From: Lepidodermella squamata | Lineage: Eukaryota > Animalia > Gastrotricha | Length of the DNA: 64,000 bases | Direction: 5' to 3' | Assembly (NCBI GenBank): GCA_047495785.1 | Contig: JBLDXI010000045.1 | Coordinates: 186,001-250,000, forward strand | Shown: piece by piece, positions 18,193-48,241 of the stretch | Position numbering within the stretch: the first letter of the stretch is position 1 | How the letters are laid out: every line of letters begins with the position of its first letter | Position numbers and translations under genes: made by a program | Notes under the pieces: generated by a model | The model's database searches: none | What the model was told of the DNA's origin: nothing | What the model saw: the letters and a program-made list of their open reading frames with translations, nothing else

Positions 18193-19809
18193 ATGGTTTC
18201 GAGCGTGGCTGGCATGCTCCATGCCTATACAACCCTGAGATCGGTCTCCCATTTTCTGCAGAAAGTCGATGAGACACCCAACGTCAAGCGCGAGGCTCTG
18301 CTTGAAGGACTGATCAACCTGACAAAAATATCACGATGGCATAGCGTCGAGGAATTTTCGACTGCCTGGCTCGCTGCTGGGGTTTACCGCGATGTTCCAG
18401 ATCATGGTTGTGAGGCGCATTATCGTATCGGGCCGCTGAGCGATCTCAAGCTTCAAGCTGTTACTCGATGGATGTCTTGTAATGAGTCTACGATCAGCGG
18501 TTCTGCTAATGAGGCGAGAACCGAGAACTATCCGAACGTTTGTTATTCGATTAATCCGTAATCTGAAGGCATGTCCGGCCAATGTGTCGCTGTGGATAAA
18601 AAACCGCGAAAAATTACCACCCTAAGTTATTTGCGCATCAATTGGGTCGTAGGTGTGTGGTGTGCGACACAAAGGAATATCTGCGAAAAGGAGAATATCT
18701 GGACCGCCCGATCAAAAAAGAAGAGAATTTTGAGTGAAATGAAATGGAAAATTTATGGCCAGTTCCTAAAAAAAATATGAGCGAACGGATATGATTGTAG
18801 TCAACATGCAATAGCAGTTTTTTCTAATTTGAAATTTGAAATTACTTGATTGAGATTTTACCGGTTCAGTCTACTCTTATCGGTGGTGTGCAACACACCC
18901 AAGGGAAGCTCGGGCAGTACCGCGTCCAGAATTTTGTGAACGCCAAGGCAGATCTAATCGAGCGTGTTTCCATCCCAAGATCGTTTTTCTCTAACGGTTC
19001 CAAATGTACTCAACTTCTGCTAGGCGCGACTCGCCCCTTACGCCCACATTTGGTCCACTGTATTGACGAATTTCGGCAACATGGTAGCAGGGCGGTCGTG
19101 AGCTAGTTGTCGGTAAGGGCAACCATTGATCGGTTCCGAGATCTCAGGAAGATTCCCAACACCTGCGACGCCAAGCTTCGGAATGCCGGGGCTCACCACA
19201 CTCTTCCGTCTTCAGCACACTTCGTTCGGCTTTGAAATAAAGCATGCGACAAGCGTGCAGCGTGAAGGGCATGAAAACTGCACCCTGTCGAGCGTGTGCA
19301 GCATGCTCGCACCATCTATCAACTTCGGATGTCCAAAAATTGGTTCATTCTTTGGTTTGCAATTCACCAGTTGCTGAAAGCTGCAAGTTCCTCAATCCTC
19401 AATCCTCAACTGTAAGTTGTGTTTCTCCTCTATGCACATTCAGTGCGTGCAGGTTTCAGCAAGCTCCAAGCTCTTTCTCTCTTCTGAACTCAGTTTTGCC
19501 TCAAGCATCAAGCCAGTAATAGGCGTGAGTCATGAGCCTAAGATACGTCGCAATTATGGCGATGAAAACGCAAACCAAGTCGAAGGCCATCTGACAAACA
19601 AATCGGACGTGGTGCCGGTCAGCGAACCCGACTTAACTCTCACTCCGGTCATCCAGCTTGCCCCAAGTTCCTCGCTGGAGATGGCGAAGCCGGCCTTCTT
19701 CGGCAACCCGGCCCGCAAAGTCGACCTACTTTGGACAATCACGGCCACACACGATCCTTCAAAGACGAAGCCCGGTGAAGAAGAAGCAGCTGGCAAAAAG
19801 GTAGCATGA
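18193..19809 (+). other. Locus X: SETDB1-N-terminal-like segment plus PxVxL-like module; exon structure unresolved, possibly a decaying paralogue
   Basis: ORF 18193-18561 has LRSVSHFLQKVDETPNVKREALLEGLI..TAWLA..DVPD, versus SETDB1 [39 protein letters not shown] 19417-19809 has EPDLTLTPVIQLAPSSSLEMA, versus gene Z DPKLKLVPVVRLEKISAEAIA. Intervening frames contain stops. Confidence 0.45.
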
Positions 19810-20651: not shown

Positions 20652-23600
20652 ATGACTGTTCGTAATTCAGACTCATTTGTTACGCTGGCCCAAGAAGACT
20701 TGGAGCAATTCCTGCAGGATGTTGATTGCTTGGATCTTGTTCGAAGGCTTCGAGAAGATGGTCTCTCTACCTGCATTTCTATTCCATCCGGTGAAACTTT
20801 TACCACGATATGTGAAAAGATGCGGCAAGTTGCGTTCAGTGCGGCCGTGCGTGATCGGATTATGAAGCATTTGACGGAGAAGGTTGAAGCTGTGATTATG
20901 ACGAATCGCATGTCTCTAGCTCTCGCGTGGCTTGGCGTTCTCATCGACGAGGCTCGCACAACGGAGAATCTCCAACGGTTTGTTGATGAGCGACGGCCTA
21001 AATTTCAAGGAATATTTTGTTTCTATATTAGAAAGGCTCTATTGGACGATTTCTTGAAGCAATACTTTGAGCACGCTGACAAGCTAAAAGACGAAACGAG
21101 AGTAATTTACAGCAATAATTGCAAATGGTCTAGCTTTAATCCGCCCGTTTATTTAGGATGACAGCGAAACAGCAGTGCTAGCCACGGCTCTGAAGATGTC
21201 AGCAGATGATGTCCCAAACGCAACAGCTGCTTTATCTTTTTTTCCTCAAATTCGTGACCTTTATCGTGACTGCCCTGATAAAGATCCATCGATCCAAGCC
21301 GATTACAATGTCGATGAATCTGTGTGGATTCAACAGTTGTTAACGTGTGGCAAGAATAATGGTGTTGATTTATATCCTTGGGCTGATGCTATGGAGATGT
21401 CGGCTGCTCAGATAAAGCAACTGATACTTCAGAAGCAAGTTGCTCTCATGAAGGAGTAAGTTATTACAGTGTTGCGAGAGTTGCTTGATGGACTAATTTT
21501 TAATTCTAGATGTAAAGTAAGCGTGGATCCGCCGAGGGCACCCAGCACGGAATTACCATCAGTCCCCGCCTCGTTTTACAGCACTAACCACTTGATGCCA
21601 GGCGTCAAACAGCCTACTGATCTACCAGTCGCCCAAGTTTTCAAAGGTGACCAAGTCTACTTGCCCGATCAACGTGGAGCTAACCACCCTTGGAAATTGT
21701 GGACGGTGATGCAGGTGAACAGAAATAAATTGTCATTGTTCGACCCGAACAAACCAGCGATGAAAATGGATTCGACGATAGAAGCCGTCGCGTCCTTCAA
21801 AAATGCGGCTGAAGAGGGAATTTGGTTTCCCGTTGGAACCCTTGTAGTTGGTTCGTTCGCTGCATATTAATGAATGACCCTGAACGAAATCATGTTTTGT
21901 TATGTTGATAGCATGGTGTGATAATGGCCAGAATACTACACCATTCGGTTTTGCTGACAATTATTATCAAGGAATAGTGTTGGAAAGTCCATGCGCATGG
22001 AACCGTTTCCGATACTTGGTGTATTTCGAAAAAGGCGAGCCACCAGCCTACGTTCGGCCTGACTTCGTTTGTCGTAGATTGAAGCAATGTTTGTTGTTTC
22101 TGCATTTTATGGTCATTTTTCTTATTTTGCTTTATTTAGTTGAAAATAACGTCGACCAGCTTACCGAGCTGTACGATCCAAAAGGCGAATTGCAAGAATT
22201 TTTCCAGCTTTTACCTCGCCGTCCATTTATCATGGCGGATGTTGGCCAAGCCTTGTCTTGTAGTTGCTTCAGCGGAATGTGCACAGTTACCGTCGAAGAA
22301 ATCGACTGCAGTCTTTTCAGGATTCAATACCAGCATCCGAAAGTTCTGCCTCCCGAATGGATATTTCGAGCTAGCAAACGATTCGAATTGATGGCTCATT
22401 TCTTAGTTAGTTCAAGTCAATTTTTGTGAAAACTAATGTAACTGTATGCGAAATATAGGTAACTGATCGGCAAGAAAACGGCAGTTTAGCCGAACCATCT
22501 CGTCGCCCACACCGTTTCAACTCATCAGCCACTGTTGAAGTCGCTAACTGGGAAGATATCGGCCCTGTTGTTGGCCCAGCCGAAGACAAGAAATTGTTGT
22601 CGAACGACGACACTTTTTCTCGAACTCGAGATATTAACAAGAAGCATAAACCGGTCGCAAGGAAGTCGACTATATCCGGCCTTGTCAACCACGGCAGGCG
22701 TAGAAAGCGAGCGAAATCACCCCCAGCAGTTCGATCGGCTGAAGAATTACAGGGTGTCTTGGTTAACGAAGAAGTCTCCAGTCGACGTGGTGGACGCCCG
22801 GAAGCTAGAGCTGCCTTGTAAAATTTTTTGGCGATTTGTTACCTACCATGACTATTTTTTTGTATTTTGTCAGTGTTCAGCATATTTGCTCGGATAAATG
22901 CGTTGCCGATGAAGCAAGTTTCTTCGCGAATCCTGATCCTTTGCGAAACCGGAATCCGTTGACTATCCCGTTTTTATGCGGGTGGACGCGTCTTCCATCT
23001 CCGAGCTCTAACCAATCGATCGTTTATTACGCGCCATGTGGAAGAGCTTTGAAAAACGCGGCCGAAGTCGACTGGGCTCTTGTCAATGAATATAAAAGCC
23101 GGTTGACTATTGACATGTTCTCTTTCGAGAGGGATGTGGACATTATCAAGCGATTTGAAACGACTGCGGTATTTATTGTTTTATTTTGAATTGTTCAGGC
23201 TCATTTGATTTATTTCTATTTTAGCCGAAGAAACTGGTCAGCGATATGAGTAATGGCGAGGAGAAGCACCAACCACTGCTTATGGTTAACAAGTTTTCTG
23301 AAGAAGTTCTCGACGGATTCCAGTACTCAAATAAGTGTGATTTATCGAATAACATCCCTCCTGATGCGTTTGAGACCGATTTTCTGGTCGGTTGCGACTG
23401 CACGGACGGGTGCCGCGATCCAACCAAATGTTTTTGCCGCCGCTTGACTGCAACATCTGCCGCCAAGCCGGACGGAAATGTTGGTTACGACTTCAAACGG
23501 CTGTTGAAATCCGTTCCCACTGGGTAAAATTTGCCTGCGAAATGTTCAATTTCGATTCTAATTAACTATTTTTTTTTAGAATTTATGAATGCAATTCCAA

Positions 23601-24387
23601 GTGTAAATGCGCTTGCAATCCGTCGAATTGTTTGAACCGCGTCGTTCAAAATGGCATGCGTGTTCGCCTGCAGGTGTTCAAAACAGCCGACAAGGGCTGG
23701 GGCGTGCAAGCCATTGATGACTTGCCGCGTGGCCAGTTCTTATGCACCTATTCAGGCGAGATTTTAACGAGCGACGAGGCTGATAAAGTTGGCCGGCAAA
23801 ATGGCGATGAATACTTGTACGATCTCGACTTCATCGACACTGCTATTCGTGTCAAACAATTTGGAGACATTGATGATGACGCATCAGAGGCATCAGAGTA
23901 TGGGCACTGAATTTGTTCTTATAATTTGGTTATATCGATTTTTTTACTTTAGGGATAGTGGCAATGGTATGGAAGTTGAACATAATGGCACAAATGGCCA
24001 GCCTGCTGCACATCGCGAGGCGTATAGTGCCTCCCTTGTTCGATTATATCACGGTTCGGCTGAAAATTATGCCTATGTAATGGACGCGAAACGTCGCGGA
24101 AATTTGTCGCGATTTTTCAACCACTCCTGTGATCCAAATTTGACGGTTCAAAGCGTTTTTGTCAATACACATGACATGCGCCTGCCTGTTATTGCTTTCT
24201 TCACTTCTCGCCGCATCCGTGCTGGCGAGGAACTTACCTGGGATTACAGCTACGAGCCTGGCAGGTGAATTTTCGGCGGAAAAACTCGTTTTAATTTTTA
24301 GCTAAATTTCTTTGATATTTCAGCGTTCCCGGCCGAATTATTCTCTGCAAATGCGGCTCTTCAATTTGCCGTGGTCGTCTGCTGTAA
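20652..24387 (+). CDS. SETDB1: Histone H3K9 methyltransferase SETDB1/eggless (Tudor, MBD, pre-SET, split SET, post-SET), multi-exon
   Basis: Tudor [29 protein letters not shown]; [25 protein letters not shown]; pre-[13 protein letters not shown]; [52 protein letters not shown]; last exon 24324-24387 [13 protein letters not shown]. Confidence 0.95.
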
Positions 24388-24560
24388 AAAATGACTATCT
24401 AGTGGAACTTTGATCAAATCACTTGCTCAGCACCAATGTGCGTAGTTGTTTTTCCGGTCTCCAAAATTATTGCTCCGGTTTTTAATAAGTTGCATAGTTT
24501 TTAATAGGTATTTTCCTTTTTTTGGGTAGAACTTATAATTTATTGAGATGGAAGAATAAA

Positions 24561-25828
24561 ATGGACGAGGAGGACAACATGCTGCTGTCGCGGTCCTGCG
24601 TTGGACTGTCGAAACTCAGCTGGCTGATGTACGAGTTGTCCAAAACCCATAACCCAAGCAGGTATGTTATTGATGCCATAATAATTTAACCGGGTATGCT
24701 ACCAAAAATTACCAAACCAGTTACCCTCGGGGTTTTCTCCAGTGAATTTTTTTCGGTAAATTCGTGGCTGAAGGATAGAATATTCTCCCGATAGGCTTAA
24801 TTATTGAAAAATAGTTCAATTCGTACAATAAGTTGAAAAAATTGAAGAGTTGTTGCTTAACTTATGGGTCACACTTGATATTCTGTAGGACTTTTGACTG
24901 ATAGTTGAAAAAAATGATTTCGTAGAATTTGAAATTTCGAATTCATTTTTCGAATTTGAAATTGGCTTCCACTGAAAGATATCTTGTGTTATATTTGATT
25001 ATTGGATAATTACTTAAAAAGTTGAGTTCAACGTGCCACTAAAGAAGCCACTTAATGGACACATTTACGTGGCTGCATATTATATTATTAAGCGTCCTTT
25101 CATTCATTAAAAGTTGCGGCTTTATTAATACTTGCCGGACTTCATTTTCACGCATTATTGAGAATTTAAGCTTGAGGTTTTAAAGCAGCTTCTAAATGCC
25201 ATTTTTTTCCTCGTGATTTTGTAGGAAAGCAAATCTGGAAAAATTTATCGCGGAATTTCGGCGAAGTGTCGATGCTACGCGGCGATTTCATCAATTTTCA
25301 GCTGAAGACCGCGATTTGTGCGCGCGAATCGGCATATCGCTGCACAATTTGCCTGATCTATTCGTCAGTTTGTACTGGTTCGACGAGCTAAAACGGCTGT
25401 ACGACGAACGCGACCCAAGCGTTTGTATTTTATATTCCCACGATAACAACGTATCGGCAACGGTCGTATCGCCTGGCTTCGAGTCGCCGGGCGATGAACG
25501 CGAGGAGAACCAGCTGTGGCGGCAATCGCCGTGGCGGATGAGAATAGTCGAGAGCGTCCAAATCGGGACGAGAGCTTTTGAATCAGTCGAGATGGGGCAT
25601 GCGTCAACTCGACGCTCTTACCAACAATCGAGGTCTTTCAAACCGGAAGGTGACAAGGAAAAACAGCGGCCGAGTGGCTCGCAAATATGGAAAAGAGACG
25701 ATAAATTGAGCCGGTTAGCGGCTGTAGTCAAGCTTGAACGACTTTCGCATCGAGAGATCGCGCTGCTAAGCGGCCGATCAAGTTCGGAAGATAGCGGCTC
25801 GTCTGCCAAAAGGTCGAGAATCAGTTGA
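24561..25828 (+). CDS. Gene Y: about 234-aa protein with SETDB1-N-terminal-like segment, AVVKLERL module and basic tail
   Basis: Exon 1 24561-24661, intron GT(24662)..AG(25224), exon 2 in frame with ORF 25316-25828. By manual count 21 of 83 positions are identical, ungapped, to the SETDB1 N-terminal region. Confidence 0.8.
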
Positions 25829-26317: not shown

Positions 26318-26840
26318 ATGGAGTCGTTTTCCGATCTTGTAGTACCTGCGAGTGAGGTGCTCATTGCTGGTGCTGTCGCAGCTGTTGCGGCCGTGGGATT
26401 TTTGAAGCGGAATTCATGGGCGGCGAGGAAGGTGGAGGCTATGGAAGCGCCTATTGTTGAAAGCAGCGATGAAAGCGACTCGGCCAATGAAGATCCAAAG
26501 CTCAAATTAGTACCGTAAGTTGAGTTTCACCTCTGATTTTGGTCCTCAAGTTGCGTAGAAATGATCCTTTTTCATTGGCTTTTTTTGATTGTTTTCGAGC
26601 AGCTCCTTTCCACTTTTTTCAATATTTCTGTTCCAGCGAAAACAGTATGAAAAATGAATGGAAGAAAGGAGCAGAAAAATTGAATTAAATTACTTGAAAA
26701 ATGAAAATGTTTTCTTTCCTGTTGTTTCTAGTGTTGTTCGACTTGAAAAAATCTCTGCTGAAGCCATCGCAGCGATGAAACTCAAGGATGAAGATGAGCC
26801 AAAATTGAAACGCCGACAGCTACTTCGCCGGAAAAACTGA
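26318..26840 (+). CDS. Gene Z: about 101-aa protein with hydrophobic N-terminal segment, PxVxL (PVVRL) motif and basic NLS-like tail
   Basis: Exons 26318-26514 and 26732-26840 join by GTAAGT..TTCTAG in phase 2, giving VLIAGAVAAVAAVGFL...KLVPVVRLEKIS...PKLKRRQLLRRKN. Confidence 0.7.
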
Positions 26841-47110: not shown

Positions 47111-48241
47111 TCATGGTACCATTTTCTCTGCAAGGTAGTCGAGCAGCTCTGATTTCGTAGCCTTGCTAACTTTCTTCCCGTCCTGAAGTGCGTAGTCGAA
47201 TGCATAACGTCCAGATTTGTCTTTGCGGTTTGGATCAGCACCTGCCTGCTCTATCAGGTACTTAACCACATTTATCCGACCCCCCTCAGCAGCAAACATC
47301 AGAGCATCCCGTCCGGTGTTGTATTCAGCTTGACTTGCATTAACACCAGCGAAATGAATCAGCCATCTGACTACATCAACATGGCCATTACGAGCTGCCC
47401 TGAAAAGTGGCTCACAGACATTGTGAACGTCGTAGAGTTTTGCGTTGAATTCTTGTACAAGCATAGCGACAATATCGACATGTCCGTAGGACGCTGCCTT
47501 ACATAAAGCATCCTCCTTCTCGAAATCAACCTTGAACTCGGTGATTAAGGCCCGGCAAACATCGGCGTGGCCTTTGATTAGAACGCAATCCATAGGCTCG
47601 TAGAAGTCGAATTTTCGGTCGATTGCTAGCGCTCGCAAAGTAGCTACATCTCCCCGGCAACATGCATCGTGAATCTGCTCCTGGACCCTTCTACGGCCGA
47701 TTCTTCCTGTTCCTATGGTATCTTGAGTTGCGCTGAACGCAAGCAGATCAGCTGGAAATGGCACCTGGCCCCAGTAGCTACCAGGCGTTGACACAGCGTA
47801 GTTACTAGAATCGGCTGTGACTGCCATTTCGTTAAACGCCCGTTGAAGGTCGAATTCGGGGTTGTAAGGAGGTGGAGGGTAGGCGGGTGCAGCATCCCCA
47901 GAGGCCTGTAGAGGGTACGGGGGCGGAGCTAGTGGGTAAGGCACTGTTGAAGGCGAGTCTGATCGAGATAGATCTTCCAGAGGGTTCAAGGAGTAGGACG
48001 GAGGTTTCGCAGATGAGTCAGCAGTTGGCTGATTCTCTGCAGGATAAGGCAACGTTGGCGTAGGCGTATAGTTGTAGCCATGCAGTGGGGTAAGGGTGTA
48101 ATTCGCAGGTGCTGCTGTGATACTAGCCTTTGCCGAGCATAGTTTAGCGTGCGAGTGGACATGACTGCCTTTGCCCGAATGGTACCCACCGCCGCCTCCT
48201 CTCATGCCAATGCTGGCCGCCGCTGCCATTCCGCCGAGCAT
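47111..48241 (-). CDS. Ankyrin-repeat protein with Pro/Tyr-rich N-terminal half
   Basis: Repeats ALCKAASYGHVDIVAMLV, PLFRAARNGHVDVVRWLI, ALMFAAEGGRINVVKYLIEQAGADPN; N-terminal PPSY, PPPY, PPPPY. Confidence 0.88.
   Translation of the reverse strand: MLGGMAAAASIGMRGGGGGYHSGKGSHVHSHAKLCSAKASITAAPANYTLTPLHGYNYTPTPTLPYPAENQPTADSSAKPPSYSLNPLEDLSRSDSPSTVPYPLAPPPYPLQASGDAAPAYPPPPYNPEFDLQRAFNEMAVTADSSNYAVSTPGSYWGQVPFPADLLAFSATQDTIGTGRIGRRRVQEQIHDACCRGDVATLRALAIDRKFDFYEPMDCVLIKGHADVCRALITEFKVDFEKEDALCKAASYGHVDIVAMLVQEFNAKLYDVHNVCEPLFRAARNGHVDVVRWLIHFAGVNASQAEYNTGRDALMFAAEGGRINVVKYLIEQAGADPNRKDKSGRYAFDYALQDGKKVSKATKSELLDYLAEKMVP

Follow-up and report, generated by a model that had tools for sequence, protein, structure and literature searches.

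Gene Y, at positions 24,561 to 25,828 of the window (the whole stretch of 64,000 nucleotides of Lepidodermella squamata DNA analyzed here), is, at a probability that we put at about 80%, a real and separate gene that originated as a partial duplicate of SETDB1 and lacks the catalytic domains of its parent; this figure covers origin, reality as a gene, and absence of the domains together. Sequence comparison across two species, the window species and a relative recovered from metagenome assemblies, identifies Y as a lineage-restricted protein-coding gene that originated when a 5′ portion of SETDB1 (approximately codons 76-190) was duplicated in tandem. Y keeps a helical pre-Tudor module followed by a divergent tail, and the event is older than the divergence of the window species and the relative. 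A copy of a SETDB1 module has been kept beside its parent, under selection, in two species that diverged long ago, in an animal group that has received little study. A sequence-only reading of the window had already called Y a catalytic-less partial duplicate of SETDB1 with a common intron position, and the similarity behind that claim proved solid and was repeated in the second species.

Structure of SETDB1 and Y in the window

The window comes from a compact animal genome with introns of ∼55 nt. Its composition is close to the 43% GC given for the published L. squamata assembly (PMC11660948). The exon map of the gene upstream of Y was drawn from tblastn. The nearest named matches of this gene are SETDB1-B and eggless. 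Pfam recognized a SET domain in the window exons; this domain is bifurcated, the post-SET exon is the last one, and a post-SET cysteine motif, C-x-C-x4-C, can be read from the sequence. In the relative, the continuous ORFs of SETDB1 contain Tudor_5, Tudor_4, MBD, Pre-SET, and SET according to Pfam. Judged by its domain set, the upstream gene at 20652-24387 is a SETDB1/eggless H3K9 methyltransferase. Pfam placed no domain on the SETDB1 N-terminus. The features of the two genes are as follows.

20652..24387, + strand: SETDB1/eggless-type gene; ATG at 20652, ∼10 short introns, stop codon TAA at 24385-24387
20652-20977, + strand: first coding exon of SETDB1 (exon A)
20877..20977, + strand: end of SETDB1 exon A, residues ∼76-108 and two bases of the split Arg codon; homologue of Y exon 1
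20978..21031, + strand: SETDB1 intron 1; 54 nt, GT..AG, phase 2 in Arg (CG/A), in frame and stop-free
21032..21101, + strand: SETDB1 exon B, 23 codons; homologue of Y exon 2 codons 1-23
21102..21156, + strand: SETDB1 intron 2; 55 nt, phase 0; present in the relative too, and in Y of neither species
21157..21324, + strand: SETDB1 exon C, initial part; homologue of Y exon 2 from codon 24 to codon ∼76
24388..24560, + strand: SETDB1-Y spacer, 173 nt; pyrimidine tract and TAG at 24510-24529, acceptor-like
24561..24661, + strand: Y exon 1; ATG at 24561, 33 codons and two bases of Arg
24662..25224, + strand: Y intron; 563 nt, GT..AG, phase 2 in Arg (AG/G)
25225..25828, + strand: Y exon 2; last Arg base, 200 codons, stop codon TGA
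25724..25759, + strand: conserved tail motif of Y (VVKLERLSHREI type), located by regex scan

Y comprises 234 codons and starts 173 nt downstream of the SETDB1 stop codon on the same strand. The positions that the sequence-only reading had given for the two introns, 20978-21031 and 24662-25224, both with GT..AG borders, proved correct, and each intron does split a homologous Arg codon after its second base (CG/A in SETDB1, AG/G in Y), as had been proposed. The Y intron is ∼10 times as long as the local norm (563 versus ∼55 nt). It matched no Rfam family, contains no meaningful ORF, and has no other copy within the window by blastn, which marks it as neither a repeat nor an introner-like element.

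No Tudor, MBD, Pre-SET, or SET domain was found by Pfam in Y of either species, and neither protein had any Pfam match at all, in agreement with the earlier claim that Y is devoid of Tudor, MBD, and SET. Y carries neither a SET domain with Pre-SET and post-SET nor the Tudor and MBD domains, the features by which a SETDB1/eggless member is recognized. Approximately 130 residues of its tail are unrelated to SETDB1, and beyond the helical region tblastn and hhalign detected no similarity between Y and the rest of SETDB1. An ORF farther upstream, at 18193-18558, was considered as a relative of Y and rejected as unrelated to it.

Similarity of Y to the N-terminal part of SETDB1

The two genes were compared exon by exon, and column scores were summed along the diagonal fixed by the common intron. 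Y and SETDB1 residues ∼76-167 share 21 identities over 83 gapless columns (∼25%) when recounted by script, which reproduces the earlier manual count of 21 in 83. The accompanying statement that the two proteins align without gaps is valid for this 83-column core, up to '..LY', and only for it, because beyond that point, at DE-RDPSV, Y is 3 residues shorter and a gap of that size is needed; past the gap, similarity resumes on the -20 diagonal (..DPS..Y..D..V). The best gapless segment on the intron-anchored diagonal has a BLOSUM62 score of 81 (∼40 bits), compared with a mean of 12.3 and a maximum of 44 in 20,000 shuffles that preserved the composition of each Y exon. A Gumbel fit to the shuffles gave p ∼1.5e-10, and the Karlin-Altschul E of Y was ∼2e-7 with SETDB1 as the target and ∼3e-5 with the six-frame window.

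All three exon pairs contribute to this score. Y exon 1 against the end of SETDB1 exon A gave a gapless score of 17-19 with 8 identities, SETDB1 exon B against the first codons of Y exon 2 scored 19 with 5 identities, and the start of SETDB1 exon C against Y exon 2 scored 35 over 36 columns. BLASTP of the window exon pieces against one another returned no match, a blank that we attribute to the shortness of the pieces. A marginal tblastn match of Y at 47179-47256 was dismissed as chance, with stop codons all around it.

AlphaFold2, run on a four-row Y alignment, predicted helices at residues 4-30, 34-57, 62-71, 75-86, and 88-96 with pLDDT of 60-79, followed by an unreliable tail. The model of the SETDB1 N-terminus is helical as well, with pLDDT <55, and both models are of low confidence (mean pLDDT of 52 for Y and 44 for the SETDB1 N-terminus). 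At an offset of +75, Y helices 4-30 and 34-57 correspond in these low-confidence models to the predicted SETDB1 helices 88-103 and 111-126, and the break between the paired helices falls at the split Arg. Foldseek against the PDB, a PDB sequence search, and the ESM Atlas yielded no usable match.

The same gene order in a relative

The relative was reached in ENA metagenome assemblies through the dehydrogenase (SDR) encoded downstream of Y, at 66% identity. An exhaustive protein search with the SETDB1 N-terminus returned one protein only, P0121, from the relative. On a 43-kb scaffold (L003), SETDB1, Y, a small gene, and the SDR gene follow one another on one strand in the order seen in the window, and the Y orthologue was found in the syntenic locus of L003, L004, L005, and L001. 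The two genes lie on the first of these as follows.

L003 10001-13224: SETDB1 of the relative
L003 13318: start of the Y orthologue of the relative

The Y proteins of the two species are 38-48% identical (BLASTP E=2e-27 for Y exon 2), the start codon is conserved, and Y exon 1 matches the N-terminal part of Y in the relative at 48% identity. The second species also ties Y to SETDB1. BLASTP matched the window Y to exon C of the relative (E=2e-4), the relative's Y to exon C of the window (E=0.004), and the relative's Y to its own exon C (E=0.021), with the same register in all three pairings and a clear local match across species, ISxxxLP.....L..FDELK.L. Along the homologous diagonal, the four Y-SETDB1 pairings over the two species had 20-22 identities in 83 columns and scores of 57-81, whereas shuffles peaked at 41-44. 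In 7 of 7 piecewise all-diagonal scans, none of the ∼300 diagonals outranked the expected one. Strong second diagonals were only those predicted by the 3-residue indel and none was heptad-shifted, so that helical periodicity is not the cause of the similarity. By hhalign, Y 67-97 was paired with exon C 8-38 (P=6.7e-4) and Y 10-50 with SETDB1 85-125 (P=0.0073); the two matches are collinear and equally spaced, with probabilities of 27% and 5% from very shallow profiles. Y is a paralogue in the sense that its similarity to SETDB1 residues ∼76-190 is significant, collinear, and reproduced in the orthologues.

The JGI metagenomes, scanned with the SETDB1 N-terminus and with Y, gave no match. Y exon 2 also drew a blank in a word-index protein search, which missed the relative's Y even though that protein is present in the collection; the orthologues have no 5-residue word in common, and the blank therefore carries no weight. 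Word-index blanks mean little for the fast-evolving genes of this genome.

Conservation of Y and its status as a gene

Selection on Y was gauged in the relative, for which L003 and L001 represent two haplotypes or strains. Their Y sequences differ by 19 synonymous and 4 nonsynonymous changes, a dN/dS of 0.057 that equals the dN/dS of the neighboring dehydrogenase. Between the two species synonymous sites are saturated, and pN is similar in Y (0.37-0.46) and in the SETDB1 N-terminus (0.32-0.41). The low dN/dS and a pN close to that of the SETDB1 N-terminus indicate that Y is a conserved coding gene and no decaying fragment. The sequence-only reading had argued that an intact frame implies retained function and had suggested a dN/dS comparison; the argument is backed both by orthologue conservation and by the value of 0.057 between the L003 and L001 copies of Y. 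As a separate observation, divergence changes abruptly along one contig: when L001 1-2267 is compared with L003 13339-15606, synonymous divergence is 0.17 in Y and 0.02 in the dehydrogenase 700 nt away.

Three other accounts of Y were weighed against these data. Were its similarity to SETDB1 due to chance or to shared helical composition, Y would be an unrelated orphan gene, a view encouraged by an identity of just 25%, by the blank BLASTP of the window exon pieces, by the want of a Pfam family, and by the low hhalign probabilities (27% and 5%) of very shallow profiles. Yet 0 of 20,000 composition-preserving shuffles came near the observed score, the register is the same in all cross-species pairings with the homologous diagonal always on top and no periodic side diagonals, and Y adjoins SETDB1 on the same strand with an intron at the common site. 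Shuffles, cross-species register, and diagonal ranks lead us to reject chance similarity within the two species, and we leave the orphan account next to no probability. That Y is a functionless duplicate fragment in decay is also very improbable. Its evolution is fast (38-48% identity between species), relatives of Y were found in one other species only, and an upstream ORF of 3 codons lies directly ahead of its ATG, but frame, start codon, and synteny have been kept at synonymous saturation. Together with the 19 synonymous against 4 nonsynonymous changes between haplotypes, the preserved frame and synteny reject decay for the lineage of the relative.

The remaining account, to which we assign a small probability, makes Y an alternative 3′ part of SETDB1 transcripts or a frame-keeping but untranslated 3′ UTR. 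It draws on the short distance from the SETDB1 stop codon to the Y ATG (173 nt, and 93 nt in the relative) and on the acceptor-like site ahead of that ATG. Against it, a post-SET exon with its own stop codon precedes Y in both species, and in the relative SET and post-SET form one exon, which leaves no donor to skip from; moreover, the start codon and N-terminal residues of Y are conserved, and the dN/dS of 0.057 was obtained in the Y frame. We therefore retain the reading of Y as a separate gene copied from SETDB1.

History of the shared intron

The Y/SETDB1 pair can serve as an internal clock for intron history. In the window, both genes have a phase 2 intron in the aligned Arg codon. In the relative, the Arg intron is found in neither SETDB1 nor Y, and the ORFs run through both sites; the spliced products of the window align without gaps to these uninterrupted ORFs at both intron sites, a comparison that supports both Arg introns as real. 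Because the contiguous ORF of P0121 lacks exactly the 18 codons of the 54-nt SETDB1 intron, the comparison argues that SETDB1 intron 1 is normally spliced out. Retention of this in-frame intron (20978-21031) would give 18 extra residues.

The wider intron content of the two species bears on how the common position came about. SETDB1 intron 2 is conserved in the relative, at L003 10405-10453, and Y is continuous at that point in both species. SETDB1 has ∼10 introns in the window and 2 in the relative, both of which are common to the window, so that 8 of the ∼10 window introns are missing from the relative. The relative's SETDB1 reads for 787 uninterrupted codons, and the contrast in intron density between two related animals is large. 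The relative's Y has a putative 65-nt 3′ intron at L003 13875-13939, where the window Y has none: the called stop codon of the relative's Y lies across a GTAAGT donor, and an additional exon reaching ∼14019 would supply 26 more residues, the tail motif among them.

The sequence-only reading had concluded from the common intron that the duplication took place at the DNA level. The same codon and the same phase speak for this conclusion; the absence of the Arg intron from the relative and of intron 2 from Y weakens it. A history in which the intron was common from the start requires at least 3 losses, the alternative being parallel gain, and since intron turnover runs both ways, an inherited intron is not the sole reading. 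We consider it probable that the phase 2 Arg intron was already in SETDB1 when the DNA was copied and was lost later from both genes in the relative. The sequences compared make it most likely that the Arg intron was inherited through a tandem duplication at the DNA level and then underwent losses. The occurrence of the intron in two old paralogues of one species and its absence from both in the other would then point to heavy intron loss in the relative (2 versus ∼10 in SETDB1).

Under parallel gain, Y would have been born without the Arg intron, and the lineage of the window would have inserted introns separately at the homologous site. The relative, with the intron in neither gene, fits such a course, as do the 8 of ∼10 window SETDB1 introns missing there, which could reflect a burst of gains; in addition, the Y site is a good proto-splice site (CAG/G), the Y intron is far from the local norm (563 versus ∼55 nt), and Y is without the older, conserved intron 2. 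But we estimate from the gene structures that codon and phase would coincide by chance with either of the two introns that SETDB1 has within the aligned region in only ∼2/300 to 2/700 of cases, the SETDB1 site (ACG/A) makes a poor proto-splice site, the Y intron is no repeat or introner-like element in the window, and the intron poverty of the relative is equally consistent with general loss. On balance, we regard separate insertion as unlikely and favor inheritance of the intron with the duplicated DNA.

Spacer, possible co-transcription, and tail motif

The 173-nt spacer between SETDB1 and Y has a counterpart of 93 nt in the relative, where an acceptor-like TAG ends at 13310 in L003, 8 nt before the ATG, and an AATAAA lies 45 nt upstream in the same spacer. 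A short same-strand spacer with an unpaired acceptor-like site before the ATG is the sequence pattern of a spliced-leader operon, and it fits Y as the putative downstream cistron of a SETDB1-Y unit. From the spacing alone we infer that Y may be co-transcribed with SETDB1. A 3-codon upstream ORF at 24548-24559 (ATG GAA GAA TAA) stops a single base short of the Y start and resembles the first Y codons.

A regex scan located a 12-residue motif (VV[KR]LE[KR][LI]S..[EA]I type) in the Y tail at 25724-25759 and again in the small gene downstream, at 26733-26768. The same motif occurs in the putative last Y exon of the relative, at L003 13941-13976. It is conserved between the species (VK[LI][EK]RLS..EI) and the rest of the tail is not, which suggests that the motif could be a second interaction surface. 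With the motif in Y, in the next small gene, and in the putative last exon of the relative, the locus seems to be the product of serial partial duplications.

Possible function and comparison with known systems

SETDB1 is a chromatin-silencing enzyme and the main silencer of transposons, and its Drosophila counterpart, Eggless, has Windei as its partner. Truncated paralogues that retain the interaction module alone are a known mode of complex regulation. By analogy with human SETDB1, whose N-terminal helical region pairs with ATF7IP, the helical module of Y, which lies N-terminal to Tudor in SETDB1, would bind an ATF7IP-type cofactor, whose gene does not lie in the window, or SETDB1 itself, and this binding would tune the amount of active nuclear SETDB1 complex. 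We offer only tentatively the proposal that Y acts through this module, by binding to the cofactor of SETDB1 or to SETDB1. The sequence-only reading had suggested that Y could be a dominant-negative or a targeting subunit, and such a role is likewise conjectural. It is an assumption that the copied segment corresponds to the ATF7IP-binding part, since the N-terminus of this SETDB1 is not alignable to that of vertebrates: hhalign against the vertebrate SETDB1-B N-terminus aligned just 5-9 columns and gave no usable alignment. In its full form the proposal is more speculative still and rather doubtful: Y would be a dedicated regulator, co-transcribed with SETDB1, that occupies a cofactor of the ATF7IP/Windei type or pairs with the SETDB1 N-terminus and so sets the nuclear active fraction, with the tail motif linking a further partner. 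If this were true, SETDB1 would provide the first case in which a gene-encoded copy of an enzyme's own cofactor-binding arm controls an H3K9 methyltransferase.

It is likewise possible, although we would not lean on it, that Y is a positive adaptor or subunit rather than a competitor, whose helical module docks on SETDB1 or its cofactor and whose tail motif recruits a factor. The conservation of the tail motif between species and its recurrence in the next small gene would suit this role, as would the conserved tight linkage of Y and SETDB1 and the self-association of human SETDB1 (PMC12167477). In either role, Y is a concrete candidate protein for control of the SETDB1-cofactor complex.

Several known systems invite comparison. 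MicroProteins titrate the partners of a larger relative, as ID proteins do with bHLH proteins and as the plant LITTLE ZIPPER proteins do. Y has the corresponding structure, being small (234 codons) and derived from a multidomain parent, with one probable interaction module kept and the effector domains gone. It differs from them in its ∼130-residue tail, unrelated to SETDB1 and with a conserved motif of its own. Short isoforms of SETDB1 that are catalytically dead or SET-less have been reported in mammals; alternative processing of the one gene yields them, and their Tudor domains are retained. Like Y, they consist of N-terminal SETDB1 sequence without the methyltransferase domain; unlike them, Y is a separate, old gene without Tudor. 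We found no description of a truncated interaction-module paralogue of SETDB1.

The closest structural comparison is with human SETDB1 2-115, which forms a three-helix coiled coil with two copies of ATF7IP (MCAF1) in which both nuclear export signals, NES1 and NES2, are buried (PMC12167477). Y is derived, in a comparable way, from the pre-Tudor N-terminal region of its own SETDB1 and is predicted, as that region is, to be helical, but it starts at approximately residue 76 and is therefore without the first helices. A precedent for a duplicate that re-tunes the SETDB1-cofactor coiled coil is ATF7IP2 (PMC12167477), which is paralogous to ATF7IP and enters alternative or mixed complexes with SETDB1; that duplication affected the cofactor, whereas in Y it is a piece of the enzyme itself that was copied. 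Set beside these systems, Y appears as a new and lineage-restricted gene of a kind already familiar, for which a function of this type is plausible.
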